Below, piece by piece: positions 3,382-57,958 of a DNA stretch of 64,000 nucleotides; within the stretch, counting starts at the first letter, position 1, and the number at the start of each line of letters is the position of its first letter. The stretch spans positions 10,700,978 to 10,764,977 of the forward strand of contig NC_083409.1 in the NCBI RefSeq assembly GCF_020745735.1. The letters are read 5' to 3'. Under the pieces are notes generated by a model, which did no database searches, was not told where the DNA came from, and saw only the letters and a list, made by a program, of their open reading frames with translations. Made by a program: the position numbers and the translations under genes. This stretch comes from Hemiscyllium ocellatum (taxonomy: Eukaryota).

Positions 3382-3710
3382 CTACACACATTCTGATCTC
3401 CTGATGCTCTTGCTGAGGGGAGAGGGGAGGGTCACGTGGGTGAGGGCACAGGAGAAGCGAGCGTTGGACTCCCAGTCAGACCCAGAGAGGGTCAGCAGGC
3501 TGCTGACACTGTAGGTGCTGTCCGAAGCTCGCAGGTAGTTGCTGGTCTGAACCCCGTCCGAAATGACTGCACCGTCCTTCTTCCACTGCACCTCCAGCTC
3601 ATCGGGATAGAAGTGATTGGCAAGGCACACCAGGGTGGCAGTGCCCTTGGCATTGACCTGCTCCGGGGAGGGGGGCAGCAGGGTCAGCTTGGGCTGAGAG
3701 TTGTCACGGA
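3382..3710 (-). CDS. IGKC: Ig kappa-type (shark type III/NS4-like) light-chain constant exon
   Basis: Acceptor TGTCTTTCAG (AG at 3712-3711). Open frame RDNSQPKLTLLPPSPEQVNAKGTATLVCLANHFYPDELEVQWKK...YSVSSLLTLSGSDWESNARFSCALTH...RSECV* has the C1-set Cys/Trp/Cys and a penultimate Cys for the H-L bond. TAG at 3384-3382. Confidence 0.97.
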
Positions 3711-4337
3711 CTGAAAGACAAGAGAAACAATTTTAATCCCTGCCTTTTGAAGGTACATAAACTCTCTGAACATTAACTGCTAAAACGTTTGAACATTTGT
3801 ACCCAGTACCTAGCAGACCTGACAAAGCACTGGCATTTTAAAAATTGCTTTTTGGGACGTGTACGGCACTGGCAGAGCCAGTCGCTGCCCATCCCTAACT
3901 GTCTCTGAGAAGGTGATGGTGACGCAGCAGAATGATAAGGGACAGTCCTGGACCACCATTTGAGGAATGAATGTGGGCAGCTGGAAGGGCTATCAATGTG
4001 GGAGCATTTTAGTGACAGTGATCGGAACTCAGTGAGATTGAGAATAGGGATGGAAATGGAGAACCGTGGAGCAAGTGTAAAAGTTTTGATTTGGGAACAA
4101 TCCATTTTACCAAACTGTGTGGTAATTTGATAAAAGAGTACTGGAACCATCGCCTTGATGGGAGATCAGTGACAGGGCAGTGGGAGGTCTCCAAGGATGA
4201 GACAGGCACAGAGATCATTCAGAATCTTTTCCCAAAAGAGTAAGAGTGGCACTCCCAAAGAGAGAGTCTCAGCAAAGATGTGAAACTATCGATATGATGT
4301 GGAGGCTCTGGTGTCCGACTGGGGTGGACATGTTCAG

Positions 4338-4505
4338 GAGTCACATGACACCAGGTTACAGTCCAACAGGTTTATTTAAAATCACGAGCTTGTGAAACGC
4401 TGCTCCATCTTCAGGTGAAGCGACTTCAGTGCTGAAGGAACAGAGCTCTGAAAGCTTGTGATTTGAAATAAGCCTGTTGGACTATAACCTGGTGTCGTGT
4501 GACTT
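4338..4505. repeat. Inverted-repeat hairpin of Penelope-like terminal sequence in the J-C intron
   Basis: TCACATGACACCAGGTTACAGTCCAACAGGTTTATTT ... AAATAAGCCTGTTGGACTATAACCTGGTGTCGTGTGA; both arms carry degenerate CTGA..GAAA cores. Confidence 0.75.
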
Positions 4506-5799
4506 CTGACCTCAAATGAAGCCCCGTTAGAGCACAATGAGAGAACTGTGTGCAGTTCTGGTCACCACATTGCAGGAAGGATGTGATCCCCCTAGAGATG
4601 GGGACAGTGGAGGGTTTTGTCAGGAATGAGGAGTATTAGCTTTGAGGAATGATTGGTTTGGCTGGGACTGGTTTCTTTGGAACACAGGAGGCTGAGGGGA
4701 GATTTGATCGATGGTGTGTAAAATGATGAGGGGTCTGGATAGAGTGGGTAGGAAGGACTGATTTCCATCAGCACAGAGGGCAATAACCATGGGGAGAGAT
4801 TGAAATGAATTGGGGGCAGGGTTCGAGGGGAGTTGAGGAGTAATTGTTTCACCCAGTGGCTGGTGGGATCAGGACCTCACTAGCTGAAAGGGTGAGAGCG
4901 GCAGAAACCCTCATCACATTGAAAAAACACTTGGATATTCACTTGAAACACCAAAGCCTCCAGAGCTATGGAGCAAGAGCTGGTATGTGGGGTGGAGTTC
5001 GACACCTCTTTAACAAACCTCCGATCACTCACAGCTCGGGAGAACTTTATCCAACAACATTGGAGCAGAGTTGGATCAGCACACTTCAGGAAGGAGTCAC
5101 GTTGGGTGTCCATGTAGAAGGTTCTAGATTTTGTTTCAAACCTTCCAGCTCAGCGCTGGGGTAAGGTCAAATGTGAGGGTGCAAAGAGTCTCAGTGTCCT
5201 GGGATCAGACAGTGACACTGCTCTTAATGATCCCATGTTCCCTGGAAGATGGAAGCGTGTATCCAACGGGCAAGGGTCAGGTTCAGGAGACTCCAACCTC
5301 AAAGAAAGACTTGCATTTATGTTGCACCTGCCTCCACCTAAGGATGTTGCAGTGGCTCTTTCCATCAGACTGTGCTCAGCAAGATCCCAGAGAGCTGGGT
5401 GACAATGAGGCGAGGATCAGATTTTTAGTGATGCTAATTAGGGAATCAATATTGACCAGGACACCAGGAGACACCGTCCTGCTGTCTGTCTAATAGAGCC
5501 ATGGAATGGCATCTCTGATATCTGAAAGGCTCCCAGTGCATCAAAAGAGAGACTTGTATGTCAGGCTCTCCCAAAGCATTTACAGAGAGTGAGGGACTTG
5601 TCTGGACACTGGTCACTGTTGTAATGCAGAAAACACAATTTGCACACAGCAATATCGCACAAAAATAAATGAGATTATGAAGCATGTTCAGTGATGTTTC
5701 AGGGATAAATATTGACCTGAAGTCAACCCAAAGAGAAAGCAAATGGGTTCACTTGCACAAAACGTGAGAAAATGAAAGGCACAGAAGGTGGGAGTCGTG

Positions 5800-7270
5800 G
5801 TTAGTGATGGGTTTGATTGTTACCAGAAAATAAAAGGAAGGATCAGAATTTGTGAATGTCATATTGTAACAAGGCAATACAGACAGTAGAAATAACCTAA
5901 AGTCTTTGTATGATAACGCATTCGGAATAAGGTAGACAGAGTGATGCCACAAATTGAGGTTCCCAAGGACTTTAAAATCATTAAAGTGACGCAGGGCTCA
6001 GGAGAGGTTAGTAAAGTTCCCAAAATAATTAATAGGACATAGATTATGGAAAGGGTCAGAAAATTAATTTTAGGCACAGTGCATAAGGGGACAACTATGA
6101 AAAGGAGGACAGTCAGTGCAGGACTGAGGGTGTTGTACCTGAATGCAGGGAGTATCCGAAATGAGGTAAATGAGCTTGTAGCGCAGATTGGAATTGGCAG
6201 GTACGATGTTTTGAGTATCACAGAGACCTGGCTGTAAGGGGTTGAGGGCTGGGAATGAAATACTCAAGGATGCACATCCGATTGACAGGACATGCTGATG
6301 GGCAGATGGGGGTGGGGTTACCTTCTTGGTAAGAAATGAAATGAGATCAATCACAAGAAGGGATTTAGAGTTGGAATGCATTCAATCTGTGTGGGTAGAG
6401 GTGAGGAGTTGCAAGGGAGAAAGAGCATGATGAGAACTTAGCACAGGACCCCCCAGCAGCAGTCAGGATATGAGGAAGAAAATAAATCAGGTGATAGAGA
6501 AGGCCCTGCTACAATAGTCATGAGGGACTTCAATATGCAGGGAGACTGGAAAATTAAATTGTTTGGGGATCTCAAGGGTAGGAATTAATGGAATGTTTAC
6601 GACATGGTTTTTAGAGCAGCTTGTGGTAGAGATCACTATGGAACAGGCAATTCTGGATTGGGTGATGTGTATTGAAGCAGACCTGATTAGGGAACTTAGG
6701 GTGAAGGAATCCCTTGGGGGCATTGACCGTAATATGACAGAATTCACCCTGCAGTTTGTGACAGGGAATCTGGAGTCAGTTGTACCGGTAATGCAATTAA
6801 CTTAAGGTAACTACAAAGACATGAGGGAGGAGCTGGCCAGAGTTGGTAAGAAAGGAAGCTGAGCATAAGAGAGAATGGAGCAGCAATGGCAGGAGTTTCT
6901 GGGGGTAATTTGGGAGGCAGAGCAGGAATTCAACCCAAGGAAGAAGAAAGGTACTGAGTGGAGGCCAAGGCAACCATGGCTGATGAGGGAAGTCAGGGTC
7001 AGCATAAAAGCAAAAGAAAAAACAGGCAATGTGGTGAAGATTATTGGGAAGCCTTTAAAAAACAGCAGAGAGTAACTAAAAAAAAGTAAGGGTGGGTGTG
7101 TAAATAAAATATAAGGGTCAGCGAGTTAGTAACATAAAAGAATATTGCAAGAGGTTTTCTTTAGATATATGAAAGGCAAGAGGGAGTCAATAATAGAAAT
7201 TGTACCACTGGAAAAGGCAGAAGTAGTAATGGGGAACAAAGAAATGGTGGAAAAAGTGCATCGGTGCCTT
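5800..7270 (+). mobile_element. CR1 LINE fragment (ORF1 end, APE endonuclease, linker)
   Basis: VLYLNAGSIRNEVNELVAQI...DVLSITETWL; multiple stops. Confidence 0.85.
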
Positions 7271-7899
7271 AAATCAGCTTTCACAGTAGTGTGGCAATGC
7301 TGCTCATTTCACAAGTTTGAGTTGTCCTTGGATTTTTTTTCAAGAGGGGTTGTAAAGGCAGAGGTTCCAATTTGTCTGGGTTAGGGACTTTGCTCATGGC
7401 TAACAGATACTGCCTAAGGCAACAGTCAGGGAAAAGGCTTTTAGGTTTTATATTAAACACTTGTCCAATAAAAGGAGAATGGCCAGTTCTTCCAGTTTGC
7501 TGTTTTTGACAAACAGTCGGTTGGAAGCTCCTGGATAAAGAAAGCTGCTGGTGAGAAAGGTTCCCCAATTCAACATTTTCCAGTGGACTCACTGTCTGAA
7601 ATTCCTCTCCTGTAAGAACCCCTGTGTTTATATTTACCTTTTTGCCAAGGCTATTACAGCATATTGGAACAACTCTTTGTCAAGTTACATTTTTTCATAA
7701 GTTGGGTTTTCAAATAGTTAAGTTATTCTAAATTCTGTTTTCTTTTGATTGTAAATAAATACTCTTTTCCTTCAAGCTGAGTGGTTTGGCCAGTTGTATC
7801 ATTCCTGGAATATCCAGGTTACATTTGCTGAACACAATTCGAAAAGGTAAGGTCTGGGCTGCATTCTTAAAATGTTTTGAAGGGTCTGGCCTGGTCCAT

Positions 7900-9290
7900 A
7901 ACAATGTCACAGAGTCCTACAGCATGGAGACAGGCCATTTGGACCAAACTGGTCCATTTACGCTAATCCTGCACTTGGCCCATATCCTTCTGAATCCTTT
8001 CCTTTGCTGTATTTGTCCAAATGCCTTTTAAATGTTATTAATGTACCCACCTCAACCACTTCCACTGGCAGCTCATTCCATATGCGAACAATCCTATGTG
8101 TAAAAAGGTTGCCCCTCAGGTTCCCTTTTATTCTTTCCCCTCTAACCTTAAACTGATGCGCTCTAGCTCATATTCGCAAACCTTGGGGAAAAGACCGAGT
8201 GAATTCACCCTATCCATGCCTCTCATGATCTTATGAGGTCCTCCCTCAGTCTCCTACACTCTAAAGAAAAAAGTACTCTCCCTTTAACCCAAACGATTGA
8301 ATCCTGGCAACATGCTTGCAAATTTCTTCTGCACTCTTTCCAGTTTAATAACATCCTTCCTGGAACAAGGTGACCAAAACTGAACACAATATTCCAAGTG
8401 TGGCTTCACCAGTGTCCTGTATAACTGCAACATAACTTCCCAACATCTGTAGTCAATGCCCTGACTGATGAAGCTCTCTTCTCTGCTCTATTTACTGTGA
8501 CTCCATTTTCAGAGAACTGCTTATCTGAATTCTAAGGACCCTCTGTTCCACTATATTCCTTAAGGTCCTATCATTCACCATGAAACTCCTACCTTGCTTT
8601 AAATTTCCAAAATACAAGACCTCACATTTATCTGTATTAAACTCTATTTGTCATTTCTCGGCCCACTTCCCCAGCTGAGCAAGGTCCTGCTGCAATTTCT
8701 GATAACTGTCCGCACTGTCCACGATGCTGCTTATTTGAGTGTCATCAGCAAACTCACTAACCATGCCTTGTACATTCTCATCCAAAACATTGTTATAGAT
8801 AACAAACAGCAATGGGCTCAGCACTGACCACTGAGGCACTCCACTAGTCACAGGCCTCCAGTACAATAAGGATTCTTCCCCTATTACCCTGTGCTTTCTA
8901 CCATCAAGCCAATCGTGTATTCAATTTGCCAGGTCACCTTGGATTCCATGCAATCTAACCTTCCATAACAGCCTACCATGTGGAACCTTATCAAAGGCCT
9001 CACTGAAATCCATATAGACCACGTCTACCATCCTGCCCTCATCAACCTTCCTGGTCAATTCATCAAAGTAACTTAACAAATTTGTGAGGCATATTCTCCC
9101 ACTCACAAAGTCATGCTGACAACTCCTAATCAAATTCACTCTTTCCAAATGCATGTGTATCTTATCTTATCAAACAACCTACCCACCACAAATGTTAAGC
9201 TTATAATTCCCAGGCTTTTGTTTTTCAGCCCTTTTTGAACAATGGCACAGTCTTCGCTATCCTCCAGTCTTCTGGCACCTCACCTGTGGC
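7900..9290 (-). mobile_element. CR1 LINE RT and 3' end
   Basis: QHDFVSGRICLTNL...VDVVYMDFSEAFDKVPH; VTSGVPQWSVLSPLLFVIY...FADDT. Confidence 0.88.
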
Positions 9291-9324
9291 TAACCATGAT
9301 GCTTAAATATCAGCCAGTACACCT

Positions 9325-10960
9325 GACCTTCAAGAGAGTTGGGAGCAGAAGTGAGTGGAGAGGGCATCACTAAGGTGGAGGGGTTGAGGCAGCTGAAAGG
9401 TCTGAAGGTGGATAAATCATTCAGACCCGAGGGACTACACTCCAGAGTTCTGATGGAGATAGCTAAGGTAATTGTAGGGCCATTGGCTGTGATCTTTCAG
9501 AAATCACTGGAGTCAGGAGTGGTCCCAGAAGACTGGAAAATAGTGAATGTAACATCCCTGTTTAAGAAAGGAGGGAGGCAGAGATGGGACATTATAAGCT
9601 GGTTAGCCTGACCTCGGTCATTGGTAAGATTTTAGAGGTCTACCTAAGGGTGAGATTGCAGGTATTTGGAATCTCACCCTTAAGTCTGGTAAAATTGCAG
9701 CCTGGTAAAATTGGGCTGAGTCAGCACAGCTTCATCAAAGGGAGGCATGCCTGATAAATCTGTTAGAAATCTTTGAGGAGGTAACAAGTGAGTTAGACAA
9801 AGGAGAGCCAGTGGATGTGATCCATTTGGATTTCCACCAGGCCTTTGACAGGGTACAATAAAGGAGACTGCTAAGTCAAATCAGAGCCCATGCTGTCAGG
9901 AGCAAGGCACTGCGAAGTGTAGAGGATTGGCTGGCCGGCACAAAGGCGAGAGTAGGGACAAAGGGATTTTTTTCTGGATGGCTGGTGGTGCTTTGTGGCG
10001 ATCTGCAGGGATCTGTGTTGGGACCACAACTATTCATATTATCCATTAACAATCTGGATAAGGAACTGAAGATATTGTTCATATGTTTGTAGATGACACA
10101 AAAATTGGTGAAAGGACAAGTGGAGTTGAGGAAGTGGGGGAGATTGCAGAAGGACTTGGTCAGGCTGGGAGAATGTGCAAAGAAGTGGCAGGTGGAGTAC
10201 AATGCGGGGACTTGTGAGGCTAGATACTTTGGTGGGAAGAATAGAGACACAGACTGTTTTCTAAGTGAGGAAAGATTTCAGAAATCTGAAGCACAAAGAG
10301 AATTGGGAGTCCTTGCTCAGGTTTCTCTGAAGGTTAACGTGCAGGTTCACCATTGGCTGTTTGAAAGGCAGTTACAGTGTTAGCATTAACTTTAACGTCA
10401 GAGGTGTACTGCTGCGTTTGTATAAGTCTCTGATCAGACCACATTTGGAATTTTGGTCTCCTTATTAAGGAAGGATGTGCTGTCATTGGAGAGGGTCCAG
10501 AGGAAAAAGTGAGAAAGAATAAGAATGATCCTGGGAATGAAGGGGGTGTCATATAAAGAGCGGTTGAGGATTCTGGATCTGTATGCAATTGAGTTTAGAA
10601 AGATGATGGGGGAATCTTATTGAAACTACAGAATATTGAGAGGCCTGGAGAACATGGAGAAGGTGTTTCCACGAATAGAAGAAACTCGGGCCCGAAGGCA
10701 AAGCCTCAGAGTGAAGAATGATCCGTCAGAACTGAGATAAGGAGGCATTTCTTCAGCCACAGGGTGGTGAATCTGCGGAACTCATTGTCACAGAGGTCTA
10801 TGGATGCCAAGATGTTGAGAGTATTTAAAACAGAGACAGATAGGTTCTTGATCAGTAAGGAGATCAAATGTTAAAAGGAGAATGGGGTTGAGAAACACAT
10901 CACACAAGATCAAATGGCAGAGCAGACTCTCTTCTGACTGGCCCAATTCTGCTCCTATAT
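9325..10960 (+). mobile_element. CR1 LINE RT and 3' end
   Basis: LKVDKSFRPEGLHSRVL...VPEDWKIVNVTSLFKKG; degenerate RT. Confidence 0.88.
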
Positions 10961-11013
10961 CTTAAGTATTTTGGGTTTATGTAGAGGTTCCTTGAAACCC
11001 TGGAAAACTGAAG

Positions 11014-11350
11014 TACGGTCACTTAGTGGTTAGCCCTGCTGCCTCACAGCGCTATGGACCCAGGTTTGATTCTAGCCTCGGGCGTCTGTCTGTGTGGAGT
11101 TTGCATGTTCTCCCTGTGCCTGCATGGGTTTCCTCCGGGTGCTCTGGCTTCCTCCCACAGTCCAAAGCTGTGCAGGTTCGGTGAATTGGCCATGCTAAAT
11201 TGCCCATAGTGCAGGTTAGGTACATTAGTCAGGAGTAAATGTAGGTTAAAAAGGTAGGGGAATGGGTCTGGGTGGGTTACTGTTCGGAGGGTCAGCGTGG
11301 ACTTGTTGGACCAAATGGCCTGTTTCCATACTGTAGGAATTCTGTGATTG
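11014..11350 (+). mobile_element. HE1/V-SINE
   Basis: tRNA-like head, V-domain GTGTGGAGTTTGCATGTTCTCCC...GGTTTCCTCC, LINE-like tail. Confidence 0.9.
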
Positions 11351-11399
11351 TATGGACATTGAAAGTACTGGTTTGTGAGCCCTGCTGTTGCTGTTTCTC

Positions 11400-12340
11400 A
11401 AAAGTACTTTGACAAAAGATAATCAGGGAGTGGTGAGAGTGAGCATCAGGTTGCATGAGGGAACTGCTTGTCCTGCTTCCTGGAATACCATGAGCACAGG
11501 AAGTGTGGTCAGTGACAGCAGTTGGAACTCCGGGTTTCGGAGCTTGAGCAGCAGCTGGTGTCAGTGAGGAGCGTCCGTGAGGCTGAGAGCTCCGTGGAGA
11601 GCACGTTTCTAGATGTGGTCACTCTGCAGCTTCAGAGTATGCAGGGAGAGAGGGAATGGGGAGCAGCAGACAGTCCAAAAGGACCAGGCAGCTAGTACAG
11701 GAATCCCATGAGTGCATCCCACTCTCCAACCAGGATTCAGTTTGGAATCCTGATCAGAATGATGGTTCATCTGGGGAGTGCAGCCAGAGCCAAGTCCTTG
11801 GCACCACGGGGGGCTCAGCTGTACACGGGGGGCACAAGGAAGACTGGAAGAGTGATAGTGAGAGGAGATTCGAGAGTGAGGGCATCGATAGGTGTTTCTG
11901 CAGCTGCAGGTGGGAATCCAGGATGATTCCCAACATCTGATTCTCTGTGCGACTGCAGAGCACCCTGAGGGGAGAGGGGGAACAGGCAGCAGTCGTGGTC
12001 CACATTGGTCCCAGTGACATAGGGAGAAAAGGGATGTGGTCCTGCAGTCAGAATTTAGGGAGTTCCAGAGGGAATTAGCAGCAGGAGCTCAAAAGTAGGA
12101 ATCTCCAAGATTACCCCAGCATCCCACGCAACTGAGAATAGAAAGAGGAGGATAGCACAGGTGACTGTGGAACTGAAAAGACAGTCCAGGAGGAAGGTAT
12201 TTCGATTATTTTAACATTGGGACTGGCTTTGGGGGGAGATGGACATGTACAGACCAGACGGGTTGCTCCTGAACAGACCTGGGACTGAGTTCCTTTGGGG
12301 TGATTTACTCGTGCTGTTGGAGAGGGTTTAAACTATCTTG
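11400..12340 (+). mobile_element. CR1 LINE ORF1 (esterase) fragment
   Basis: IVRGDSRVRA (GDS motif) region; degenerate. Confidence 0.7.
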
Positions 12341-12806
12341 GCCTGTGGGATCCAGGAGGTAATACCAGAGAGGAACACAGAGGTGCACAGAATCCTGGGA
12401 GAGATAGATAGCACCAGAATAAGGAATAGAACTTCTTACCCAGTTTCAGAGTGAGGGAGAGAGAGTAATAAATTCTAAATCAGGGTCACTGTGTAAGGAT
12501 GGGACTGCACAGAGTGTTGGGAATAAGACTGGGAAGGTACAGCCACAGAGTGTTAAGTGGAAATCTGATGTGTGCCTCTCACATAGGAAGATTAGATAAT
12601 AAGAACATTAGAAATAGGAGCAGGAGTGGGCTATCTGACCCATCGAGGATGAGGGACATTAGTTATGAAGATAGACTGAAGATGTTGGGACTGTTTTCCT
12701 CAGAGAAGAGAAGGCAGAGGGGAGATTTGATCGAGAAATTCAAAATCAGGAGGGGTCTGAACAGAGTAAACCAGGAGAAAATGTTCCCACCTGAGAAAGA
12801 ATTAGT

Positions 12807-13098
12807 GGGCGGCACGGTGGCACAGTGGTTAGCACTGCTGCCTGAGACCCGGGTTCAATTCCCGACTCAGGCGATTGTGTGGATTTTGCACGTTCTCCCC
12901 GTGTCTGCGTGGGTTTCCTCCGGGTGCTCCGGTTTCCTCCCACAGTCCAAATGTGCGGGTCAGGTGAATTGGCCATGCTAAATTGCCCATAGTGTTAGGT
13001 AGGTGTAAATGTAGGGGTATGGGTGGGTTGCGCTTCGGCGGGTCGATGTGGACTTGTTGGGCCGAAGGGCCTGTTTCCACACTGTAAGTCTAATCTAA
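12807..13098 (+). mobile_element. HE1/V-SINE nested in a CR1 3' fragment (about 12640-13410)
   Basis: GGCGGCACGGTGGCACAGTGGTTAGC, GGTTCAATTCC, V-domain, TAATCTAA tail plus A-run. Confidence 0.93.
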
Positions 13099-13850
13099 AA
13101 AAAAATTGAAGGGGAGAGGCCATGGATTGAAAATAATTGGTAAAAGAAGCAAAAGTGAGATGAGGGAAAAACATTTTCAGCCAGTGGGTGGTTAAGGTGT
13201 GGAATGCACTGCCTGAGAGTGTGGTGGAGGCAGCTTCAATTGAAACATTCCGAAGGGAATGAGACTGTTATTTGAAAAGGAACAATGTGCAGGGTGACAG
13301 GGAGAAGGCAGGAGAATGACACTCAGTGAATTGCTCATTCAGAGAGCCGGTCCAGACAGGATGGGCTGAATGGCCTCCGTGTGCACTGTAAATACTCTGT
13401 GATTGTGTGATTGAGCAGAGTTAAAGCTGGGGGAGATGGGAACTCGGTGTCTCACTGTGCTGCTGCTGTTGCTGCTGCTGAGGTCAGTGAGATCAGAGAC
13501 TGGGACAGGGAGCCAGAGCTCACATCAAACTCTGCCCCGTGTCCGTCACACTGAGACTGGCAGGAGGCTACTCACTGATTTCACTCCATGCTGCAGGAAT
13601 GGGACCACAAGCTGCAAATGGATAGAGCTCCTCCACACGGTGAGTAAAACTTACTGACTTATATCTTGCTGCTTAAAGGGGCCAATGGAACTAAAGAAAT
13701 ACAGCTGGACACCCTGTTAGACACAGTGCTCCTCAATCAACCACTTCTATCACTGCAGCTCCCCACTAACACCTGCATCAATTCAGCATTTGTGATTTAG
13801 AAAGTTTCAGTATTGAAAGGGTTAATAACGGAGGATTGAGGTTTACTTAC

Positions 13851-13885
13851 TCAGTCTGAGCTTGGTTCCTTTACCGAACGTAAGC
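13851..13885 (-). CDS. IGKJ: Ig light-chain J segment (LTFGKGTKLRL)
   Basis: G CTT ACG TTC GGT AAA GGA ACC AAG CTC AGA CTG A|GTAAGT gives the FGxGT motif and a phase-1 donor at 13850 matching the C exon phase. Confidence 0.97.
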
Positions 13886-14893: not shown

Positions 14894-14953
14894 GGTGTGT
14901 GCTCCTGTCCCTGTGCCTGGTTCCTGATAAACTCTCCCTTCACTGGGCTCTGC

Positions 14954-15033
14954 TTTATAAAGCTGCAGCCTGTGAGAGTCTGACTGGGTGTTCCTCAGTA
15001 TGTAAATGGCATCAGGCAGAGAGAGCCACGTCA
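14954..15033 (-). promoter_or_regulatory. V promoter: TATA-like TTTATAAA (14954-14961), variant octamer ATTTACAT (15007-15000), TGACGTGG CRE/UPRE-like element (15033-15026)
   Basis: Positions about 60 and 107 bp upstream of the ATG fit Ig light-chain promoter architecture. The octamer has one mismatch to ATTTGCAT. Confidence 0.7.
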
Positions 15034-16029
15034 GCCCCTCACATTTCCTCCTCTCACTCTCTCTCTATCTCACTCTCTTTGTCTCAGAGAGTGATTGATG
15101 TGAACAGCACTGAATGAGGCCACTTGGCCCATTGTGTTTGTGCTAGTAAACAAAGATCTGATGGCACTAATCCCATCCTCCAGCTCTTGGCCCATTACCC
15201 TGGAGGTTACAGCAACACAAGGGAATATCTAAACACTGCTCCAATGTCACAAGAGTTTGTGACTCAACCAGCCTTTCAGGCAGTGAGTTCCAGACTCCCC
15301 CCACCCTCTGGTTGAAAACATTTCTCCTCAATTCTCCTCTCACTCTGCAACTCAACTGGGCCTGGATTCACTCGAGTTTAGAAGGATGAGACGGGATCTG
15401 ATTGAAACATATAAAATTCTAACAGGGCTGGGCAGGGAGGAGGTTCCCCTGGTTGGGGAGTCTGGAACCAGGGGACACAGGCTCAGGGAGATACAGGGTA
15501 GACCATTTAGGACTGAGATGAGGAAACATTTCTTCACTCAGAGGATGGTCAACCTGATGAATTCTCTACCACAAACGGCTGTGGAGGACAAGGAACTGAA
15601 TATATTCAAGAAAAAAGAGAGTTGTTTTGCATTTTAACAGCATGAAGGAAATGGGGAGAAAGCAGCAACACAGCATTGAGAGAGAGGATCAGCCATGATC
15701 ATACTGAATGACACACAAGACTCAAAGGGCCGAATGGCCTGCTCCTGCTCCAAGTTTCTATGCGTCCATGTCTGTGTTACCTTCAATCTCTGTCCCTGGT
15801 TATTGAGTCCTTTACTCTTGTATAAAGTACCTTCCTATGCAACACATCACTGCCAACAATTATCTTATACCTCTCTATCAGGTCCCTCTCAACCTTCAAT
15901 GCTCCAAGGAAAACTGCCCCAACCTTTCCAATCTTTCCTCATAGCTGACCCTCCATCCCAGGCAGCATCCTGGGAAATCTCCTCTGCCCCTTCTCAAGTA
16001 CAATCACATCCTTCCCAGAATGTGGTGAC

Positions 16030-16380
16030 CAGGACCTCTCTCTCTCTCTCTCTTTTCCCCTTTCTGTCTCACATCTGCTACTTTGATCTCTCTACATCTA
16101 TCTCTCTCTCCCACTGTTAATCTCTCTCATATTCCCTCTCTCTCACTCTGTCTCATAGCCACTCTCTCCAACTCACTCACCCTTCCTCACTCTGTATCAT
16201 AATCTTTCTCTGTCTCTCACTGCCTCCGTCACTTGCTCCATCTCTCACTTCAATCGAAAGCCTCCAAATGTTATCTCCCCCTCTCTATTTCTCCCTCTGT
16301 CTCTCCCTCCTTGTCCGCATCCCACTTGACCTCTATTTCTCTTTCTCTGTCTCACTTCTCTCTCTTTCTCAGTGTCCCAG
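16030..16380. repeat. Polypyrimidine/CT-rich low-complexity tract
   Basis: Near-exclusive C/T with (CT)n runs. Confidence 0.85.
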
Positions 16381-16759
16381 GTGGTGACAGTTGAATTCAG
16401 GATAAATCTCTCTCTGCTCTGCCCGACAAATGGATGTTAACCCTTTACCCCAGAAGCATGTCTTCTCCTGGAGTAAAGGCCCATTTCCACATTGACCAGG
16501 TTTTGGTATCTCTCAGGAAGATGGACAGATTCTTGTTAAATGAAGGGCAGTTCTGTGCTGTTGGTCTATTCTCACTGGGGACTGGTTTGGACACAAACCT
16601 CATTCCATGAAGGCCCAGCAGAGAGAGGAGATCCTCAGGCCATCAGTGTGAGCTGGAGGGACAGAACAGGCTCTGACCCACTGACCCATCCTGTCCATTC
16701 ACAACATGTTCCAATCCCTTCCCCTCTCCTTCCCCTTCCATGGTCAGTCTCTGAGTCAG

Positions 16760-18402
16760 TTGGACCATCACACATGTACAACAGAAAGGAACTGAACCCC
16801 ACACCCACCATGGTGTCCACGATGCACTGGACTCTCCAACAGATTCCAGTCAACATGGACATCAGTTCCCGAGAGTGCCCCATAGAGAGACATGGGCCTC
16901 CTTTCCAATGAGCTCCCAAATAGAGACCAGTAAACATGGGCATCATTCCTGCTTGAGCCTCCGATAAAGACCAGTACATATTGGCCTCCTTCCTAATAGA
17001 CTCACCAAAGAAGACCAGTAAACATGGACCTCCTTCTGACTGGATACTCCAAGAAGACCAGGAAATGTGGGCCTCCTATTCAGTTGTCCTTCTAATGGAG
17101 ACCAGTGGATAGTTGAGTTTTTGAAGAAATAGATAGATTAAGATAGATCAGTACACATCGTCGACAAGGACTTTAGCAAGGCCTTAGACAAGGTTCCCCA
17201 TTGTAGACTGCTTAGTAAGATTATATCACAGAGGATCCAGGTAGAGCTAACTAATTAAATATAAAATGGGCCTAATGGTAGGAGGCCGAGGCTGGTGAGA
17301 GAGGGTTGTTCTTCAGACTGGAGGCTAGTGACCAGCTGTCTGCCACAAGAATCGATCCTGGATCCACTGTTGTTCATCATTTATATGAACAATTTGTATG
17401 AGAAAATAGCAGGAATGGTCAGTAAGTTTGTGGCATCGTTAACAGGGAAGAAGGTTATCTAAGAATGCAATGTCATCTTCATCAACTGGACCAGTGGATC
17501 AACAAATCCAGATGGAGTTTAATTTCGATAAATGCAAGGAGTTGCATTTTGGTAAGACCAACCAGGGCAGGAATTGCACAATTAATGGTGGAGCCATGGG
17601 GAGTGTTGTTGAACAGAGAGACTGAGGGGTACAGGTACATAGTTCCTTGAAAGTGGTGTCACAGGTAGACAGGATGGTGAAGAAGGTATTTGGCACGTGC
17701 ATATTCACTGGTCAAAGCAGGGAGTACAGGAGCTGGGACATCATGTTACAGCTGTACAAGGCATTGGTAAGGCCACATGTGGACACTGTGTACATTCCTG
17801 CTCACCCTTCTATAGGAAGGAAGTTATTACACTGGTTTGGATAAAAGAAAGATTAACAGGGATGTTACCAAGGTTGGTGAGTTTGAATTATAAGGCGAGG
17901 ATGGATTGGCCGAGAGATTTTTCCAGTGAATGCAGGAGATTGAGGGGTGACCTTAGACAGGTTTATAGAACCATTAGGGCCATGGATAAGGTGATTAGCC
18001 AAAGTTTTTTTCCCCCCAGGGTAGGAGAGTCCAGTATGAGAAGGAATAGATTTAAGTTGAGAGGGGAAAGAATTAGAAGGGCCCTGAGAGACAACCTTTT
18101 CACACAGAGGATGGTGTGTATGTGTAATAAGCTGCCACAGGAAGTGGTAGAGGTGAGTACAATTATTACATTTCAAGGACATTTTTACAGGAACATGGAT
18201 AGGAAGGATTTAGAGAGGATTGGGCCAAACGCATGCAGATGGAACTAGTTCAGTTTTGGAAACTTGGTCGACATGGATGAGTTGAGCTGAAGGGCCTGCT
18301 GCCACGCTGTAAACCTCTATGGCTCTATGATGATGTAAACATGGGGCACCTTCCCATAGGACCAGTCAACATGGGCCTCCTTCCCATTGTATTGTCCAGT
18401 AC
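16760..18402 (+). repeat. Degenerate 44-bp minisatellite interrupted by a CR1 insertion (17108-18330)
   Basis: GACCAGTAAACATGGGCCTCCTTCC-like unit starts at 16925, 16969, 17013, 17056 and 17100, and resumes at about 18331-18402. Confidence 0.85.
17108..18330 (+). mobile_element. 5'-truncated CR1 LINE
   Basis: YRSWDIMLQLYKALVRPH...FTQRMVCMCNKLP; CTCTATG tail. Confidence 0.9.
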
Positions 18403-18419
18403 CTGAGCTGCAAACCCCA

Positions 18420-18790
18420 CATCTTGTCCATTACGTAGGTCTCTTATTTCAATCTGCACAACATTGTTTGTCTCTGCACTACCTCAGCCTCTTGACCACT
18501 GAAACCCCAATTCCTGCACATCCCACCTCCTGACTCTATGATGTCAATGTCCTCTCCCAGCTTCCTGAAGCCACATTCCATAAACCCCAACTTGTCTGAT
18601 ATGGAGTGGTCCCTTCCCTGTCTTACAACTACAGTTGTTCCAGAATCTGACCTCACTGCCAGCCAATTGCCTCCATAGCCTCCCTCCTCCCTCACTCTGT
18701 GTCCTGCTGTAGACTCACATTCCCTCCCTCCCCCTTCCACCTTCTGTCTCTGGTCTCCTACCCATTGCTGCTTCCTCCATCCCACCATTG
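18420..18790 (+). mobile_element. L2 LINE 3' fragment
   Basis: Degenerate L2 RT C-terminal region, similar to 20240-20680. Confidence 0.55.
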
Positions 18791-20239
18791 ACAGCAGAGC
18801 CTTCAGACCCCGAGAGTATCCTTTCTGCCTTCCTGCCCTTCATCCCTCCCTCTCTCGTTGTTTGTGCTATTGAATATACTGTTCAGTTCCATCACTTTTG
18901 GTTCGCTGTTCCCTTGCCATTGATTTGCTGATTTATTCTGGTAAATCTAGACTGGTGTGTTCTCTGAGTTGGTTCAAGAGTGTTTTGCTTGAGAAAACAC
19001 TTCTGTGAACTGGTTTGTCTGTTTCTTCCAGTCTTTGTGTAAAGGTGAGACTAAGTGTGTAAATGCTGTCATTTCATGGAGCAATCCAGTCAGTCCCACC
19101 CCCTCCCCTACTCGACCCCCAGAGCCTTGCAGGTTTATTTCCATCAAGAGCCCATCCAATCTGCCATTGCAATCACTGAGTGTCTTCACCTGCCTCACCT
19201 GAATGGGCACTAATTTCCAAGTCATTACCAATTGCTGCTAAAAAAAGTTCTTCCTGGCATCCCATATCTCTTGCCCAACAAAATGCAAGGTAATCTCAAT
19301 GTGAAGATGGGATTTTGTCTCCACACGGACTGTGCGGCGGTCACCCTTACTGATACTGTCATGGACAGATACACCAGCAGCAGGCAGGTTGGTGAGGGTG
19401 ATAGTGAGTATGTTTTTCCCTCTTGTTGGTTCCCTCACCACCTGCCCCAGGTCCAGTCTAGCAGCTGAATCAGGTGGAACTTGACCAGCTTGCTCAGTAG
19501 TGATGCTTCTGAGCAGGTCTTGATGGTGGACTTTGAAGTCCCTTACTCAGAGTATATCCTGCATCCTTCTCCCCCTCAGTGCTCCCTCCAAGTGTTGTTC
19601 AACATGGAGGAGGACTGACTGCTCAGTTGAGGTTGGAGTGGAGGGTGGTGCTATGTGGTTATCAGCAGGAGGTTTGCTTCCCCATGTTTGACCTGCTGTC
19701 ATGAGGCTTCATGGATTCCATAGTTAATGGTGAGGACTCTCAGGGCAACTCCCTTCCAACTGTACACACCACTGTGTTGCCTCCCCTGCTTGGTCTATCT
19801 TGCCAGTTAGAAACTGAATGAGGGAACAATTCTGTGCAGGTTTCACAGCTTGGAGACAGAGCTGCTGCTGGATTCTGTTTCTCATCTCCGAGTGCAGCCA
19901 TGTGTGTTTGTGAGAGAATGACAGACACTTTTTCCATCGTTGTGCTGTTTCTGAAAAGAAAAATCCCAGAACCAGCCTCCTGTGCTGTCAGGTTCCAGGG
20001 AGTGCAGATGGTTCACAGTTTTCTCCCATCTCAGTAACAAACACCCAGCAGCTCCGAGCTCCTTCTTTCACTTCCTCTTTTGGTGAAGTTTCAACCTTGT
20101 GCTCTGACAGTCTTTGCAGTTATTTTTTACACTGGGGCTTTCTGCTGTGGTCAGAAACTCTAATAATAAGTGTCCAATCCGTGACAATCACAGCAGCTAA
20201 GAGTAGTCAGGACTGAGGAGCCAGGCTCACTGTGAAACA

Positions 20240-20680
20240 TATTGGGAAGATCAAAGCCATTCCCTTCAGCTCCTGGTATAAACTCCATCCCTCTCCCTGA
20301 GCACTATCTGCTGCTCAACCAGACTCTTTACAAACTTGGCCTCATCTTTGAGGCTGATCTGAGCACCATATCCTCCATCCACAAAGATCAGCCACTGAAA
20401 ATGTCTGTCATGTCCATGGGACTCCAAACATGACCATGCCAATGTTGTGCTTGCACACATCACAGCCACTGCCCTCCGTAACCTTCAGCTCATCCCAAAT
20501 TCTGCTGCCCATATCCAAACTCGCACCAAATCCCATTCCTCCAACCTCCTGCACCCTGTGCCTACATTGGCTCCTGGTCCAGCAACATCTCGATTTTCAA
20601 ATTCTCATCCTTGTTCTCAAGTCCCTCCCTGTCCTCCACTCTCCCTATCTCTGTAACCTCCTCCAAACTGCCTCACTCAG
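20240..20680 (+). mobile_element. L2 LINE 3' fragment
   Basis: LRNLQLIPNSAAHIQTRTKS; LHWLLVQQHLDFQILILVLKSL. Confidence 0.75.
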
Positions 20681-20879
20681 TGTGATCAACAATCTTGGAT
20701 ATATGGCTGTCTATTCCTTCATCCAAGTCATTTAGAAATATCGTGAAATGCTGAGGTTCTAGCCCAATTCCCTGGGGACACCACTATCCACATTTTGCTC
20801 ATTGGAGAGCGCACACATTATCCCTCCTCTCTGTCTCCTCCCTCCAAACTAATTTCTGACCAAAGATAAATATTTTTCC

Positions 20880-21920
20880 CTAACTGGCGAGAATGGGAGA
20901 AAGCAGAGGGACATAGTGGAAGGATACTTGTCAGATTGGAGGCCTGAGTCTAGTGGAGTTCCTCAGGATTGATGCTGGGCCCATTACTGTTTGTCATCAA
21001 TATCAATAATTTAGAAAACATGAGAATAGCCGGTATTGTGGACAATGAGGAAGGTTATCAGATATTGTAGCAGGACCTTGATCAGCTGTGGAGGTGGGAA
21101 AAGAAATGATAAATTGAGTTTAATGTAGATAAGTATGAGGTCTTGCATTTTGGAAAGTTAAATCAATGTAGGAGTTTCATGGTGAATGGTAAGGCCTTAA
21201 GGACTGTAGTGGAACAGTGGGATCTCGGAGTTCAGGTGCACAGTTCTCTGAAAGTTGAGTCACAGTTAGACAGGGCAGTGAAGAAGGCTTTTGGCATACT
21301 GGCCGTCATCAGTCAGGGCACTGGGTGTAGAAGTTGGGAAGTTATGTTTCAATTGTACATGACATTGGTGAGGCTGCACTTGGAGTATTGTGTTCAGTTT
21401 TGGTCACCTTGTTTTAGGAAGGATATTATTAAACTGGAAAGAGTGCAGAATAAATTTACAAGGATGTTGCCAGGTTTCAACATCTGAGTTTTTGGGAGAG
21501 TTTGGACAAGCTAGGACATTTTTCTTAAGAGTGTCGGAGACAAAAGGGGAATCTTTTAGAAGTGTATAAGATCTTGAGAGACATGGATAGGGTGAATGCA
21601 CTCAGTCTTTGTCCCAGGGCTGGGGAATCAAGGACTAGAGGGCATCAGTTGAAGGTTAGAATAAACGGGAACCTGAGGGGCAACATTTTTACACAGAGGG
21701 TGGTAGTCGTATGGAATGAGCTGCCAGCTGAAGTGATTGAGGCGGGTACATTAACAACATTTAAAAGGCATTTGGACAAATACATAGATAGTATGCAATT
21801 TGAAGGATATGGACCAAATGGAGGGAAATGGGGTTAGTGTGGATGGATATTTTGGTCAGCACGGTCCAGTTTGGGCCAAAGGGCCTGTATCTGTGCTGTA
21901 GGACTCGATGACTCTATGAC
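20880..21920 (+). mobile_element. CR1 LINE RT and 3' end
   Basis: MHFGKLNQ...LVRLHLEYCVQFWSP...FTQRVVVVWNELP; GACTCTATGACTCT tail. Confidence 0.9.
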
Positions 21921-29600: not shown

Positions 29601-29705
29601 AAATATACTTTCTCTGGACTCAAGTTATATCACTTCTGAAGGCTTCTCATTTTCCAGCTGTCCCTTTACCTGTGAGCAACTTCCCCCAATCAGCTTTTCA
29701 GAGTT

Positions 29706-30018
29706 TTAGATTAGATTGCTTAGTGTGGAAACAGGCCCTTCAGCCCAACAAGTCCAGACGGACCCTCCGAAGAGCAACCCACCCAGACCCATTCCCCTAT
29801 GTTTACCGCTTCACCTAACACTATGGACAATTTAGCATGGCCAATTCACCTAACCTGCACTTTTTTAGACTGTGGGAGGAAACCGGAGCACCCGTAGGAA
29901 ACCCACGCTGACATGGGGAGTATGTGCAAACTGCACACAGACAGTTGCCTGAGGTGGGAATTGAACCCGGGGCTCTGGCACTGTGAGGCAGCAGTGTTAA
30001 CCACTGTGCCACCGTGCC
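29706..30018 (-). mobile_element. HE1/V-SINE
   Basis: Reverse complement of the SINE at 57651, with AATCTAATCTAA tail. Confidence 0.92.
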
Positions 30019-35500: not shown

Positions 35501-38490
35501 GAAGAGAAGGATGTGGAAGCATTTTTCATGTTGTTTCAGAAGATAGCAACACAAGTGAGGTGGGAAAAACAGGTTGGACCTTGCCCGTGCAAAATGAACT
35601 TGAGAAGCACAAGAGGTTTCTACATCCCTGTCAGAGGAATGTTCTCGGGATCATGAGGAAGTGAAATCGGCTATTCTAAGCACATATGAGTTGGCCCCAG
35701 AAACATACAGACAGATGTTTCAGAACTTACACAAACAGCCTGGACAAACCTCTACTGAGTTTAAGAGAGTTTAACAAAATAATATTGACAGGTGGATAAG
35801 AGCATTAACAGCTGAGAATACTTACAATGCTCTCAGAGAAGTTATATTTTGAGAAGAATTTAAAGCTTCCTTCCCTTCTAGAGTTAGAAATTAATGTCGA
35901 AGACCAAAGGGAACGACAGCAAGACAAACAGCTAGAATGGCTGATGATTGTAGACTTTGTTAAAACCAAAACCCTGCAGATGCTGGAATCCAAAGTAGAC
36001 AAACAGGAGGCTGGAAGAGCACAACAAGCCAAGCAGCATCAGGAGGTGGAGAAGTCACCTGATGGGAGATTAATCCAGAAACCTTTTTCCCATCAGGCCC
36101 AGAAATGGGAGAAAAATAAAAATTGGGAGAGTGTGAGGATGGAAGGTAGCCAGGGGAGAGAAGGGTCAGGAGGGAACAGCCCAAGAACTCCTCCTCAGAT
36201 TAAGGAGGAAATTGCTGAGGGTGGAAGTGATGATCAGAAGCTGAAATGTTTCTCTTGGAATAAGGTGGGCCATGTATGTTTGGAATGTTGGAAGTTGTGA
36301 GGTAAACCCAGGGGATTTATGGGAGTTAGTAAAATGAATCAGAGAAGGGAACACAAACTGACAATCCCACAGAGCAGGTTGTAGCTGTAACTATAGCAAA
36401 AAGGCCGGAGGTGAATTATGTCATGAGTAAAGGAAGTTGTCAGGTAGATGAGAGGTGGACAGGACTTTTATCAAAAGGAATGGTGACTCCTTTTTCTTCA
36501 GCTAAACCCAGAACCAAACTGAGAGATACAGGAGCAACACAGTCACTTTTACTGGAGAAAAAATTGATTTTCCCTCCAGAGAGCTCAATGGGAGCTAATG
36601 TATTAATCAATGGGATTGGTGGAGAATATGTTCCACTTCCATTGTATACAGTACAACTGGAATGTGATTTGTTATCAGGAGAAGAAATTGTCGGAATGTG
36701 AAAACATTCCCTGTTGAAGGAGTCGATTTCCTTCTGGGGAATGGTTTGTCAGAACTAAAGGCAGTAGCTTCCCCGATAATTACAGAATGTCCAAAGGAGG
36801 GCCAAGAAACAGAACAATGACAGGAACAGGTTCCTGGTCTCTCTCCTTCGTGTGAGGTAACCAGGGCAATGGTTAAACAAAATCCATCAATAAGGGTTGA
36901 TGTGACAAGACAGCAAGTGAAAGGATCGCTGAAACGTTCCAAAAGGGTGAAGATAATCCAGGTGGAGTGGTTGGTATGATGTCACTAATTCCAGCAGATC
37001 CAAAAAGCAGATCCTGAATGAAATAAATGAGCACAGTCAGCTCATAATGAGGTCAAGGCTGAAGGAGTTTCAGAGTGTTATTGTGTTCAGAATGGAGCGC
37101 TGATGAGGAAGTGGAGACCCCCTCAAAGACCCCCAGAAGAATGGTCGGTTAGACATTGGCTAGTGGTCCCACCCAGCTATCAGAGGGAGATAGTACAAGG
37201 GGCACATGAGACTTTTATGGCAGGTCACATGGGGATTTGGAAAACACAGGCATTCAGAAACAGGTATTTTACTGAGCTACAATTGGATAAAGATGTGGTG
37301 CAGTTTTATAAAACGTGTCTTACTTGTCAAGTTATAGGTAAACATCAATACAAAACCAGCATCCTTAATTCCTTTCCCAGTTTTTGAGGAACCATCCCGT
37401 CATGTACAGGTTTGTCAAGTAGTGAGTATAATAGAGGAGGGGATCAGAAAAAGCTTGAGATCAAAAAAGACCTGGACACTTCCCAAAGTAAACTTCCTGT
37501 TATTAGATGAACAAATTCAGAGATATTTGAGACTTCAGACACAATTTTTGTATCTGGAGAAAGATCAACAGGTAGATTTAGTGAGGCTGCTCAGACAATA
37601 CAAAGATGTTTGTATGAGGAGTCATTGAGGACTTTGGTTCTGTCCTTGATGGAGCTTAGAAAGATGAGAGGGAATGTAATTGAAACTTACAGAATACAGG
37701 GTGGCCTGGATAGAGTGGACATGGAGGAGATGTTTCTAATAATAGGAGAGTTGGAGACCCGAGGGAACAGCCTCAGAGTGAAGAGATGATCTTTCGAACT
37801 GAGTTGAGAAGGACTTTCTTCAGCCAGAGTGTCATTAATCTGTGGAACTGCAGAGGGCCTTGGAGACCAATTCGTTGAGTGTATTTAAGACAGAGATAGA
37901 TTGGCTCTTGATTGGTCAAGGGATCAAGATTTACAGGGAAAAGGGAAGAGATTGGGGCTGAGAAACATTATCAACTGTAAATGACCAGACATGATGGGCC
38001 AAATGGCCCAATTCTGCTCCTTTATCTTGTGGACTTGTATTGATACACTTAGATCTATCACATGAATCAAATATAACATGAATTTGGTAATTCAGACAAA
38101 ATAAAACAAAAACCAACCGAAACCGGCAATGGAACAGAGGGCTTCCATGTTGGAGAATCAGCTGATTGAACCATATCAGAGTAATTGGAGTTCTCCTGTA
38201 GTATTGGCTCCTGAACCAAACTGTTCAATTTAATTCTGTGTAGACTTGAGGAATCTGAGTCTCGTCATAAAACCAGATTCATTCCCTATTCCCAGCTGAG
38301 AAGGTTGTATAAAGAGGGTTTGTAGCATATCATTCTTGTATAAAATTGATTTGTTAAAAGGATGTTGACAAGAACTCACTGATAACTAGAACTAAGCGAG
38401 TTTCTGTATTTATCACACCTAATGGATTATACCCAATGGCAGGTTTTGCTCTGTGGACTTAACAACTCTCCAGGCACATTTGAATGATTA
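35500..38490 (+). mobile_element. Gmr1-type Ty3/Gypsy LTR retrotransposon remnant (gag-PR-INT-RT order)
   Basis: SCAN-like gag EEVKSAILSTYELAPETYRQMF; degenerate knuckle CFSWNKVGHVCLEC; protease LRDTGATQSLL; integrase zinc finger AHETFMAGHMGI...TCLTCQ; then RT LIEPYQSNWSSPVVL...FCVDLR...KIDLLKG at 38147-38480. Confidence 0.88.
37630..38060 (+). mobile_element. CR1 3' fragment inserted in the Gmr1 remnant
   Basis: CR1 RT C-terminus and 3' UTR motifs. Confidence 0.8.
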
Positions 38491-43049: not shown

Positions 43050-44000
43050 AATCATGGAATTGGATGGAATTTGAGAAATGCATTTACGTTGGGTCAGGAA
43101 TGAGTCTGTCTAGCAGACAGAGAGGAAGGATAATGTGCATGTGTTCCAATGAGCCAGATGTGAGTAGTGGTATTCCCAGGGATCTGTGCTGGGACCACAG
43201 CTTTTCACGATATTTCTCAGTGACTTGGATGAAGAAACAGAGAGCCGTATATCCAAGATTATTGATCACACTGAGTGAGGCAGCTTGGAGGAGGTCACAG
43301 AGATAGGGAGGGTGGAACAACAGGGAGCAGATTGAGAACAAGGATGGGAATTTGAAAATCGAGGTGTTGCTGGACCAGGAGCTGATGTCAGTCAGCTAGG
43401 ATTGTGTCGGTTATAGTGGGGTGGGGAGGCATGGGCAGGAGTATGGGGTGGACTTGGTGTGAGTTTGAACACAGACAGCAGAGTTTGGAATGAGTTGATG
43501 TTTACGGAAGTCAGTGGCTGTGATGTGGGCCTGGATAACATTGGAATGGTCTCAAAAACATGGTTGAGATTTTCAGTGGCTGATAATTGTGATGTGGAGG
43601 ATTTGGGCCTCAAATCAGCCCCAAAGATGAGGCCAAAGTTGTAAAGAGTCTGGTAGAGCAGCAGACAGTGCTCAGGGAGAGGGATGGAGTTTGTACCGGG
43701 AGCTGAAGAGGATGGCTTTGATCTTCCAATGTGTTTCCCAGTGAGCCTGGCTCCTCAGTCCTGACTGCTCTTAGCTGCTGTGATTGTCACTGATTGGACA
43801 CTTATTATTAGAGATTCTGACCACAGCAGAAAGCCCCAGTGTAAAAAATAACTGCAAAGACTGTCAGAGTACAAGGTTGAAACTTCACCAAGAGAGGAAG
43901 TGAAAGAAGGAGCTCGGAGCAGTTGGGTGTTTGTTACTGAGAGGGGAGAAAACTGTGAACCGTCTGCACTCCCTGGAATCTGACAGCACAGGAGGAGGCC
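43050..44000 (-). repeat. Inverted paralog of 19975-20880 (V-upstream flank)
   Basis: Shared unique core plus the same adjoining L2/CR1 fragments with the same junctions. Confidence 0.92.
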
Positions 44001-46451: not shown

Positions 46452-46464
46452 NNNNNNNNNNNNN
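46452..46464. other. Assembly gap, 13 N
   Basis: Run of 13 N. Confidence 1.
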
Positions 46465-47105
46465 TTCAATGATAAACTGGTTCCACTTTCTGCTGTCATA
46501 TTCTGTAGCCCCTGGGCCATCTCAGTGACAACCATCCAGGGCTCAGGGTGGATTCCAGAGCATCTCATTATCCTGACTGTTGTGTTCCTCAGTCCACATG
46601 TGGCTCCAGCAATCTCACTCCATGGTTCTCGTATCAGTGGGAACCATGGGGCTGAAATCTTATCCAAACAGAATCTCATACAGCAGGGAGGCTGCTGGTG
46701 GATCAGAACCCCTTGGATTCAGTCCAGATTCCCACTGTGGCTCTTTCATTCAAACACAGCATTAGCACTTGACACCACATTCAGAGGGCAATCCTGAGAT
46801 GGGGCCAAGTTTGGTTCTTGATTCCAATGTGAGGAAATGGGGGCTGGGTGTGAAATGTCTAGTCTGAAACTGGTGGGGTACTTTATAATGAAGAATAGAA
46901 ACTGATGTCAGAATAAAGTCAGGTGTTGATGGAGTGAGGAATATCTCAGTGATCTGTCTCCAGAATCCACAGCCTACACACATCCTTCTGTCAGACCCTG
47001 AGGCTGAGAAACAGCTCCTTGACATCTAACATTTCTCAACTTTCCCAGAAATGGTGAAATATTTTCTTTGTCAGTGATTCCTGGGACAGGACATATTAAA
47101 AAGTG

Positions 47106-57650: not shown

Positions 57651-57958
57651 CACGGTGGCACAGTGGTTAGCACTGCTGTCTCACAGCGCCTGAGACCCGG
57701 GTTCAATTCCCACCTCAGGCGACTGACTGTGTGGAGTTTGCACGTTCTCCCCGTGTCTGCGTGGGTTTCCTCCGGGTGCTCCGGTTTCCTCCCACAGTCC
57801 AAAGATGTGCGGGTCAGGTGAATTGGCCGTGCTAAATTGCCCGTAGTGTTAGGTAAGGGGCAAATGTAGGGGTGGGGTGGGTTGCGCTTCGGCGGGTCGG
57901 TGTGGACTTGTTGGGGCGAAGGGCCTGTTTCCACACTGTAAGTAATCTAATCTAATCT
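57651..57958 (+). mobile_element. HE1/V-SINE, well preserved
   Basis: A box TGGCACAGTGG, B box GGTTCAATTCC, V-domain, (TAATC)n tail. Confidence 0.95.

Follow-up and report, generated by a model that had tools for sequence, protein, structure and literature searches.

Kappa light-chain clusters in the window

The window (the whole stretch of DNA that was analysed, 64 kb in length) belongs to a multi-cluster array of shark kappa light-chain genes. Searches with tblastn identified one V and one C within the 64 kb, both of which belong to a cluster on the minus strand, here called cluster 1. Its V-kappa occupies 14893 (the leader ATG) to 14364 and is composed of a leader, an intron and a V exon, followed by the RSS (CACAGTG-12-ACAAAAACC). 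The best matches of this V among solved structures are kappa chains. The J segment (LTFGKGTKLRL) is located near 13878, and C at 3702–3385. The V promoter (14955–15005, minus strand) contains, measured from the ATG, an octamer variant, ATTTACAT, at approximately 105 bp upstream and TTTATAAAG at approximately 65 bp upstream.

The J-C intron of cluster 1 (3385–13878) is about 10 kb long and is full of repeat copies. Two of these (11017–11343 and 12811–13100) belong to a repeat family of around 300 bp that is also found at 29704–30018, 39869–40146 and 57651–57955. At 12150–12182 on the plus strand the same intron contains the sequence GCACAGGTGACTGTGGAACTGAAAAGACAG, in which an E2A-type E-box (CAGGTG) is combined with a TGTGG core and with GGAACTGAAA, the last being a 10-mer identical to the PU.1-IRF4 site in the 3′ kappa enhancer of human and mouse (PMC3972084). 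This element lies about 1.7 kb downstream of J, which is the place of the mammalian intronic enhancer; the corresponding intron of the partner cluster falls within an assembly gap.

The two ends of the window are close to identical, in that 1–1934 recurs as a direct repeat at 62070–64000 with 99% identity. The array has a recent higher-order tandem period of 62,069 bp. This period contains two clusters, older and diverged, that face each other head-to-head. The partner of cluster 1 has the opposite orientation, and its V-J-C is expected at the position of an assembly gap of 13 N (46452–46464). Directly to the right of this gap, 46466–47106 is the inverted homologue of the block that is found downstream of C in cluster 1 (1453–2098, 93.8% identity). 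The V-J-C of the partner cluster is therefore missing from the assembly, with at least about 13 kb of this cluster missing or collapsed at the gap.

The block downstream of C is a non-coding island, 1.3–1.9 kb from C, which recurs at 63518–64000 in addition to the inverted copy at 46466–47106. It does not contain GGAANNGAAA. The sole exact octamer in the window, ATTTGCAT at 45365, was considered as a second V promoter close to the second copy of the module described below, and was rejected: it sits in repeat-like DNA and has no V behind it.

Extent, origin and conservation of the upstream module

Comparison of the window with itself gave a single inverted match, of 19976–20871 to 43995–43082, and the two copies were then aligned globally. 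Copy 1 of the module is located at 19990–20360 (approximately 370 bases) and is 94–96% identical to copy 2, which is inverted and lies at 43610–43981, 2.46 kb from the assembly gap. The remainder of the match (20361–20871, with its partner at 43609–43082) is a co-duplicated flank, and was used as a neutral yardstick. Copy 1 is upstream of V, on the side away from C, at a distance of 5.08 kb from the leader ATG of cluster 1 (14893). A sequence-only reading of this DNA had described a unique module 5 kb upstream of V. The distance is correct for copy 1, for which alone the linkage of module and V is seen directly, the partner V being hidden by the assembly gap. The description as unique is correct for the window, which holds no third copy, but not for the genome, in which the contig depth discussed below shows the module to be multi-copy.

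The segment 19976–20235 is identical to 43995–43736 (inverted) at 249 of 260 positions (95.8%), with 11 substitutions and no gap columns, very close to the earlier estimate of about 10 substitutions in about 255 nt. Identity is 91% over 20236–20360, with one gap column. The high conservation noted previously is thus real, but its length is not 260 bp: the well-kept part covers about 385 bp, to approximately 20360. The flank has lower identity, as had also been noted. It does not have a flat value of about 75%, however, but is uneven, with 71% over 20361–20560 (44 gap columns), 87% over 20561–20760 (one gap column) and 76% over 20761–20871 (two gap columns), and as a whole 79% with 47 gap columns. 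In the full alignment there is therefore an excess of conservation in the module (95.8% compared to 79%, Fisher p = 3e-11), and the corresponding K2P distances are 0.046 for the module and 0.256 for the flank. The core of the module (20051–20232) has only 5 substitutions in 182 nt (K2P 0.028), and a 55-nt stretch at 20102–20156 has no difference at all between the copies. The module is conserved above the neutral level set by the flank, and strongly so, between two old paralogs.

On the side towards V the shared segment has a sharp edge, with homology ending abruptly at 19976/43995, and this edge is formed by the remnant of a transposon 3′ tail (19976–19990, plus strand, approximately 14–16 nt). 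Seven repeats in the window end in this tail, the motif of which is ATGGGCTGAATGGCCTCCTCCTG and then tgctg. In copy 2 the whole repeat tail (44011–43980, minus strand) precedes the module. In copy 1 the tail has been cut, so that GCCTCCTGTGCTGT alone is left (the last 14–16 nt), and beyond this is unrelated DNA. On the far side of the module, both copies enter one diverged old repeat fragment (approximately 20660–20871), of which 20665–20856 weakly matches 39145–39337, and the shared segment ends at later insertions, of a LINE and others (20882 and 43055). Because the cut tail, the module, the spacer and the old repeat fragment are common to both copies and in the same order, the two copies are, as read from this arrangement of sequence, one ancestral segment that has undergone segmental duplication, and not separate insertions.

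This origin bears on the proposal that the module is a mobile element of moderate copy number (SINE- or MITE-like, with a few hundred near-identical copies) which sits in the clusters by chance, a proposal that we consider improbable. The sharp edge at 19976/43995 would suit it, but another repeat, through its cut tail, accounts for this edge. The module has no tRNA-like head, no poly-A or other tail and no terminal repeat, and the 64 kb contain no third copy of it. An element inserted before the duplication should match the divergence of the flank (79%), yet the module is 96% identical; and independent insertions would not have both junctions in common. The core had previously been described as not recognisable as a transposable element, and it is indeed not simply the copy of a transposon.

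Several other identities were tried and rejected. A SINE head was discarded, since ARAGORN found no tRNA-like sequence. A coding exon is not compatible with the stop codons in all six frames of both copies, the absence of codon periodicity in the substitutions and the absence of an ORF. For a structured RNA, no Rfam family matched anywhere in the window, and the z-scores for folding were +0.97 (plus strand) and +0.52 (minus strand).

A weightier alternative, although still an unlikely one in our view, is concerted evolution without function; the sequence-only reading had itself given gene conversion as a caveat. Gene conversion or unequal exchange among the kappa clusters would have homogenised this stretch, and any motif matches within it would be incidental. 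The locus offers several observations in its favour. The same pair of clusters has a second island of high identity, namely the block downstream of C (1453–2098 compared to 47106–46466, 93.8%), which is beside DNA with 83% identity (1196–1454 compared to 49010–48728), and patchy homogenisation therefore occurs in this locus. The direct repeat at the window ends, with 99% identity between sequences 62,069 bp apart, likewise means that recent exchange and duplication are active here. In addition, the identity at the distal side of the module falls gradually (96, 91 and 71%), as it would at the edge of overlapping conversion tracts. The arguments on the other side come from the position of the candidate binding sites and from the depth of the module in related species, and are presented with those data.

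Candidate binding sites and similarity to light-chain enhancers

Five candidate binding sites are unchanged in both copies of the module, and all are found within 113 bp (20066–20178). The first is a PU.1/IRF-type composite, GAGGAAGTGAAA, at 20066–20077 on the minus strand and, in identical form, at 43894–43905 on the plus strand in copy 2. It matches the EICE consensus GGAAnnGAAA. The EICE (20066–20075) reads towards V, in the same direction as V, and has AAAAGA/AAAA just 5′ of the site. It is followed by a kB-like site, GGGGCTTTCT, at 20134–20143 (plus strand; copy 2 43828–43837, minus strand), which lies inside the identical stretch 20102–20156 and agrees with 9 of the 10 positions of GGGRNNYYCC, missing the consensus at one position. 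Next are a RUNX/CBF core, TGTGGT, at 20146–20151 (plus strand; copy 2 43820–43825, minus strand), and a MEF2-type site, CTAATAATAA, at 20160–20169 (plus strand; copy 2 43802–43811), which fits YTAWWWWTAR and is assigned by this consensus match only. The last is a CCAAT of NF-Y type at 20174–20178 (plus strand), present in both copies. The composite had already been located correctly in both copies by the sequence-only reading, as had the CCAAT and the AT-rich element given there as TTATTATTA, which is the MEF2-type site; the further occurrence that it listed for the 12-mer GAGGAAGTGAAA, at 35655–35666, is also there.

The context of the CCAAT is CCAATCAG in copy 2 and in every contig of the three related shark species described below. 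In copy 1 it is altered from CCAATCAG to CCAATCCG by a C at 20180. At both 20180 and 20204 all the contigs of the three species carry the letter of copy 2, and the changes in copy 1 are therefore private to it.

The composite motif alone is weak evidence, because GGAANNGAAA is found 9 times in the window compared to 4.2 expected. The MEF2-type consensus has 10 matches in the window on the two strands, of which four are the two module sites read on either strand. The combination of EICE, MEF2, RUNX and CCAAT within 200 bp is found in the window only at the two copies of the module, where simulations with a Markov-1 model lead one to expect 0.007 such four-site clusters per 64 kb, for motifs that were chosen after looking. 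None of the 11 differences between the copies falls in a motif, which would happen by chance with a probability of about 0.14 and is not significant. There is no conserved E-box: CASSTG is absent from both copies, and where copy 1 has CAGATG, at 20005, copy 2 has CAGACG. A CTCF or insulator element was rejected, the CTCF core having no match in either copy even with two mismatches allowed. It is worth adding that the best-kept core of the module coincides with this dense cluster of motifs typical of light-chain enhancers, which argues against neutral conversion as its origin.

A further possibility, raised in the sequence-only reading as a variant of its proposal, is that the block is the promoter of a germline (sterile) transcript through V-J, which would open the cluster for recombination. 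In favour of this are the position of the block upstream of V, its EICE reading in the V direction, and the presence in it of an Ets site together with an AT-rich element and a CCAAT box. This variant nevertheless fits less well than an enhancer, and we think it has little chance of being correct. Just 4–5 bp separate the CCAAT from the AT-rich element, which is not promoter spacing, and the latter is an exact fit to MEF2. There is no CpG enrichment, with an observed/expected ratio of 0.10–0.14, and RNA-labelled runs from the same species contain next to none of the words of the module, although this last is weak evidence. A single-cell RNA run of a related species gave 0 reads, which does not count either way.

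Known light-chain enhancers that have an EICE sit downstream of C, not upstream of V. In a teleost, the Atlantic cod, the enhancers of the light-chain clusters have reportedly been mapped, by reporter assays, downstream of or beside C. The cod clusters illustrate the idea that each V-J-C cluster can have an enhancer of its own.

The Ig-lambda enhancers of chicken, human and mouse show striking conservation of four kinds of site (E-box, NF-kB, MEF2 and PU.1-IRF4) but not of the spacers, and mutation of the NF-kB, MEF2, PU.1 or IRF4 site in the chicken enhancer strongly decreases its activity (PMC3972084). The order of sites in chicken is NF-kB GGGCATCCCC, 3 nt, MEF2 CTAAATTTAC, about 12 nt, CCAATCAG, about 40 nt, and PU.1-IRF4 AAGGAAACGAAA (PMC3972084, Fig. 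S2B). The shark block is like these tetrapod enhancers (chicken cIg-lambda-E, human Ig-lambda-E and mouse E-lambda 2-4/3-1) in having NF-kB-type, MEF2 and PU.1-IRF sites within 100–200 bp, and it shares with the chicken enhancer the order kB, MEF2, CCAATCAG. The spacing is not the same. In the shark the kB-like site is followed by 16 nt containing the RUNX core, the MEF2-type site, 4 nt and then CCAATCAG, whereas in chicken only 3 nt separate kB from MEF2; and the shark PU.1-IRF site, unlike that of chicken, is inverted and lies 58 nt away at the opposite end of the kB/MEF2 pair. The shark block also differs from the tetrapod Ig-lambda enhancers in being upstream of V rather than downstream of C, in having no conserved E-box, and in being present in hundreds of copies, one per cluster as judged by depth, rather than once or twice per locus.

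The mammalian Ig-kappa 3′ enhancer provides a second comparison. Like the shark block it is associated with a kappa-type gene and has a GGAAnnGAAA composite, the PU.1-IRF4 site being GGAACTGAAA in human and mouse (PMC3972084, Fig. S5) and GGAAGTGAAA in the shark. It is located downstream of C-kappa and has conserved E-boxes beside the composite, while the shark block is 5 kb upstream of V and has none. Of the features that characterise light-chain enhancers, the block thus has the composite Ets-IRF site, the MEF2 site (as a consensus match) and, as a candidate for the NF-kB site, a kB-like sequence with 9 of 10 consensus positions, but neither the position downstream of C nor the conserved E-box. 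By its set of sites, a resemblance to the light-chain enhancers of birds and mammals is plausible on paper.

Copy number in related sharks and proposed function

Contigs from one run each of three related shark species (A, B and C) were mapped on 14900–20890, at 80% likeness. The values given here are summed contig depths in thousands, in the order A/B/C. The module has a depth of 12.8/27.7/15.5 in the bin 20100–20299, and of 18.0/33.8/25.6 at position 20204. For the 400 bp that directly precede the V leader the values are 15.7–18.8/10–12/6.9–8.4, for the intergenic bins 18500–19299 they are 1.9–3.7/0.2–0.9/0.35–0.9, for position 20365 they are 0.9/1.5/1.7, and for a LINE fragment at 17500–17699 they are 516/279/313. 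The depth of the module is therefore similar to that of the V-proximal DNA, 4–100 times that of its intergenic neighbours, and 10–40 times below that of LINE fragments. The longest contigs in species A, which are presumably single-copy, have a depth of about 25–60, and from this we infer that the module is present at a few hundred copy equivalents. The depth fits a model in which there is one module per kappa cluster, retained in cluster lineages of which the flanks have drifted beyond the 80% limit, although depth is not proof of linkage.

A young repeat family would also give many deep contigs that are near-identical in three species, as observed here (each contig having a depth of around 1,300). 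For a mobile element, however, one has to set against this that the depth equals that of the V-proximal DNA. Gene conversion without function meets a different difficulty, since across three species and a few hundred copies it would have to act on this one block of 370 bp without touching the DNA next to it, the depth being 12.8–27.7 thousand on the module compared to 0.9–1.7 thousand at 20365.

The contigs also give some indication of the ancestral organisation. In all three species there are contigs that join 16748 directly to 18591, and one contig joins 15070 to 16134. Other clusters thus lack these LINE and repeat insertions (a 1.84-kb piece of LINE in the case of 16748–18591), and the ancestral distance from V to the module was therefore less than 5.1 kb.

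The sharing of 31-mers with the contigs was compared for the module and for the flank (20400–20871) as a control. For the module the shared fraction is 0.41–0.59 in A, 0.30–0.38 in B and 0.32–0.35 in C, and for the flank it is 0.57–0.82, 0.47 and 0.22–0.33, respectively. By this measure the module shows no higher constraint across species than the flank, which is in keeping with gene conversion without function. However, the divergence among the species is just a few per cent, too little for shared words to say anything about constraint on the module; the excess conservation accordingly rests on the paralogs. The lower share of the module in A is to be expected, because in a homogeneous family the contigs drop rare variants that are private to one copy.

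On the basis of these observations, we hypothesise that the block is a cis-regulatory module and part of the unit that makes up a kappa cluster. It would most likely be an enhancer of the B lineage, with one copy in each V-J-C cluster. Judged from the sequence and its comparisons, this is the best of the available readings, and we would give it roughly an even chance. The candidate per-cluster enhancer put forward by the sequence-only reading is strengthened by the excess conservation, the set of motifs and the depth of about one copy per cluster, but gains nothing from word sharing across species, which is no better than for the flank.

If the block is indeed an enhancer, an Ets factor of the PU.1/SpiB group would bind to the GGAA core and recruit IRF4/8 to the adjoining GAAA half-site, and factors of NF-kB, RUNX, MEF2 and NF-Y type would occupy the tight cluster of sites that is 58–100 bp from the EICE. 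The bound factors would together open the chromatin of the cluster and, over a distance of 5 kb, would drive or increase transcription from the V promoter. Open chromatin and transcription of V would in turn allow V-J joining. Possibly the bound factors would also target somatic hypermutation. Shark light-chain genes hypermutate. The set of NF-kB, MEF2 and Ets/PU.1-IRF4 sites is needed for activity in hypermutation targeting (PMC3972084), and the shark block may have this as an extra role.

A more far-reaching suggestion, which we advance tentatively and regard as rather unlikely, is that the shark block shares its enhancer logic by descent with the Ig-lambda and 3′ kappa enhancers of tetrapods, and would be a cluster-autonomous enhancer of shark kappa genes. 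In a search of the literature we found no description of an enhancer in the Ig loci of cartilaginous fish, and we are aware of no antibody locus in this group for which one has been identified.

Sharks have hundreds of small V-J-C clusters, of which few are expressed in each B cell. If conversion alone accounts for the block, it is an unremarkable side effect of a tandem gene array. Under the suggestion of common descent, each of the few hundred clusters would have its own copy, which could decide the cluster that is activated in each B cell and the aim of hypermutation. A short candidate in each cluster, with a PU.1-IRF site that can be mutated, makes the activation of single clusters, exclusion and the targeting of hypermutation in sharks open to experimental test. 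Should this suggestion be true, the grammar of light-chain enhancers would date to the common ancestor of jawed vertebrates, 450 million years ago.
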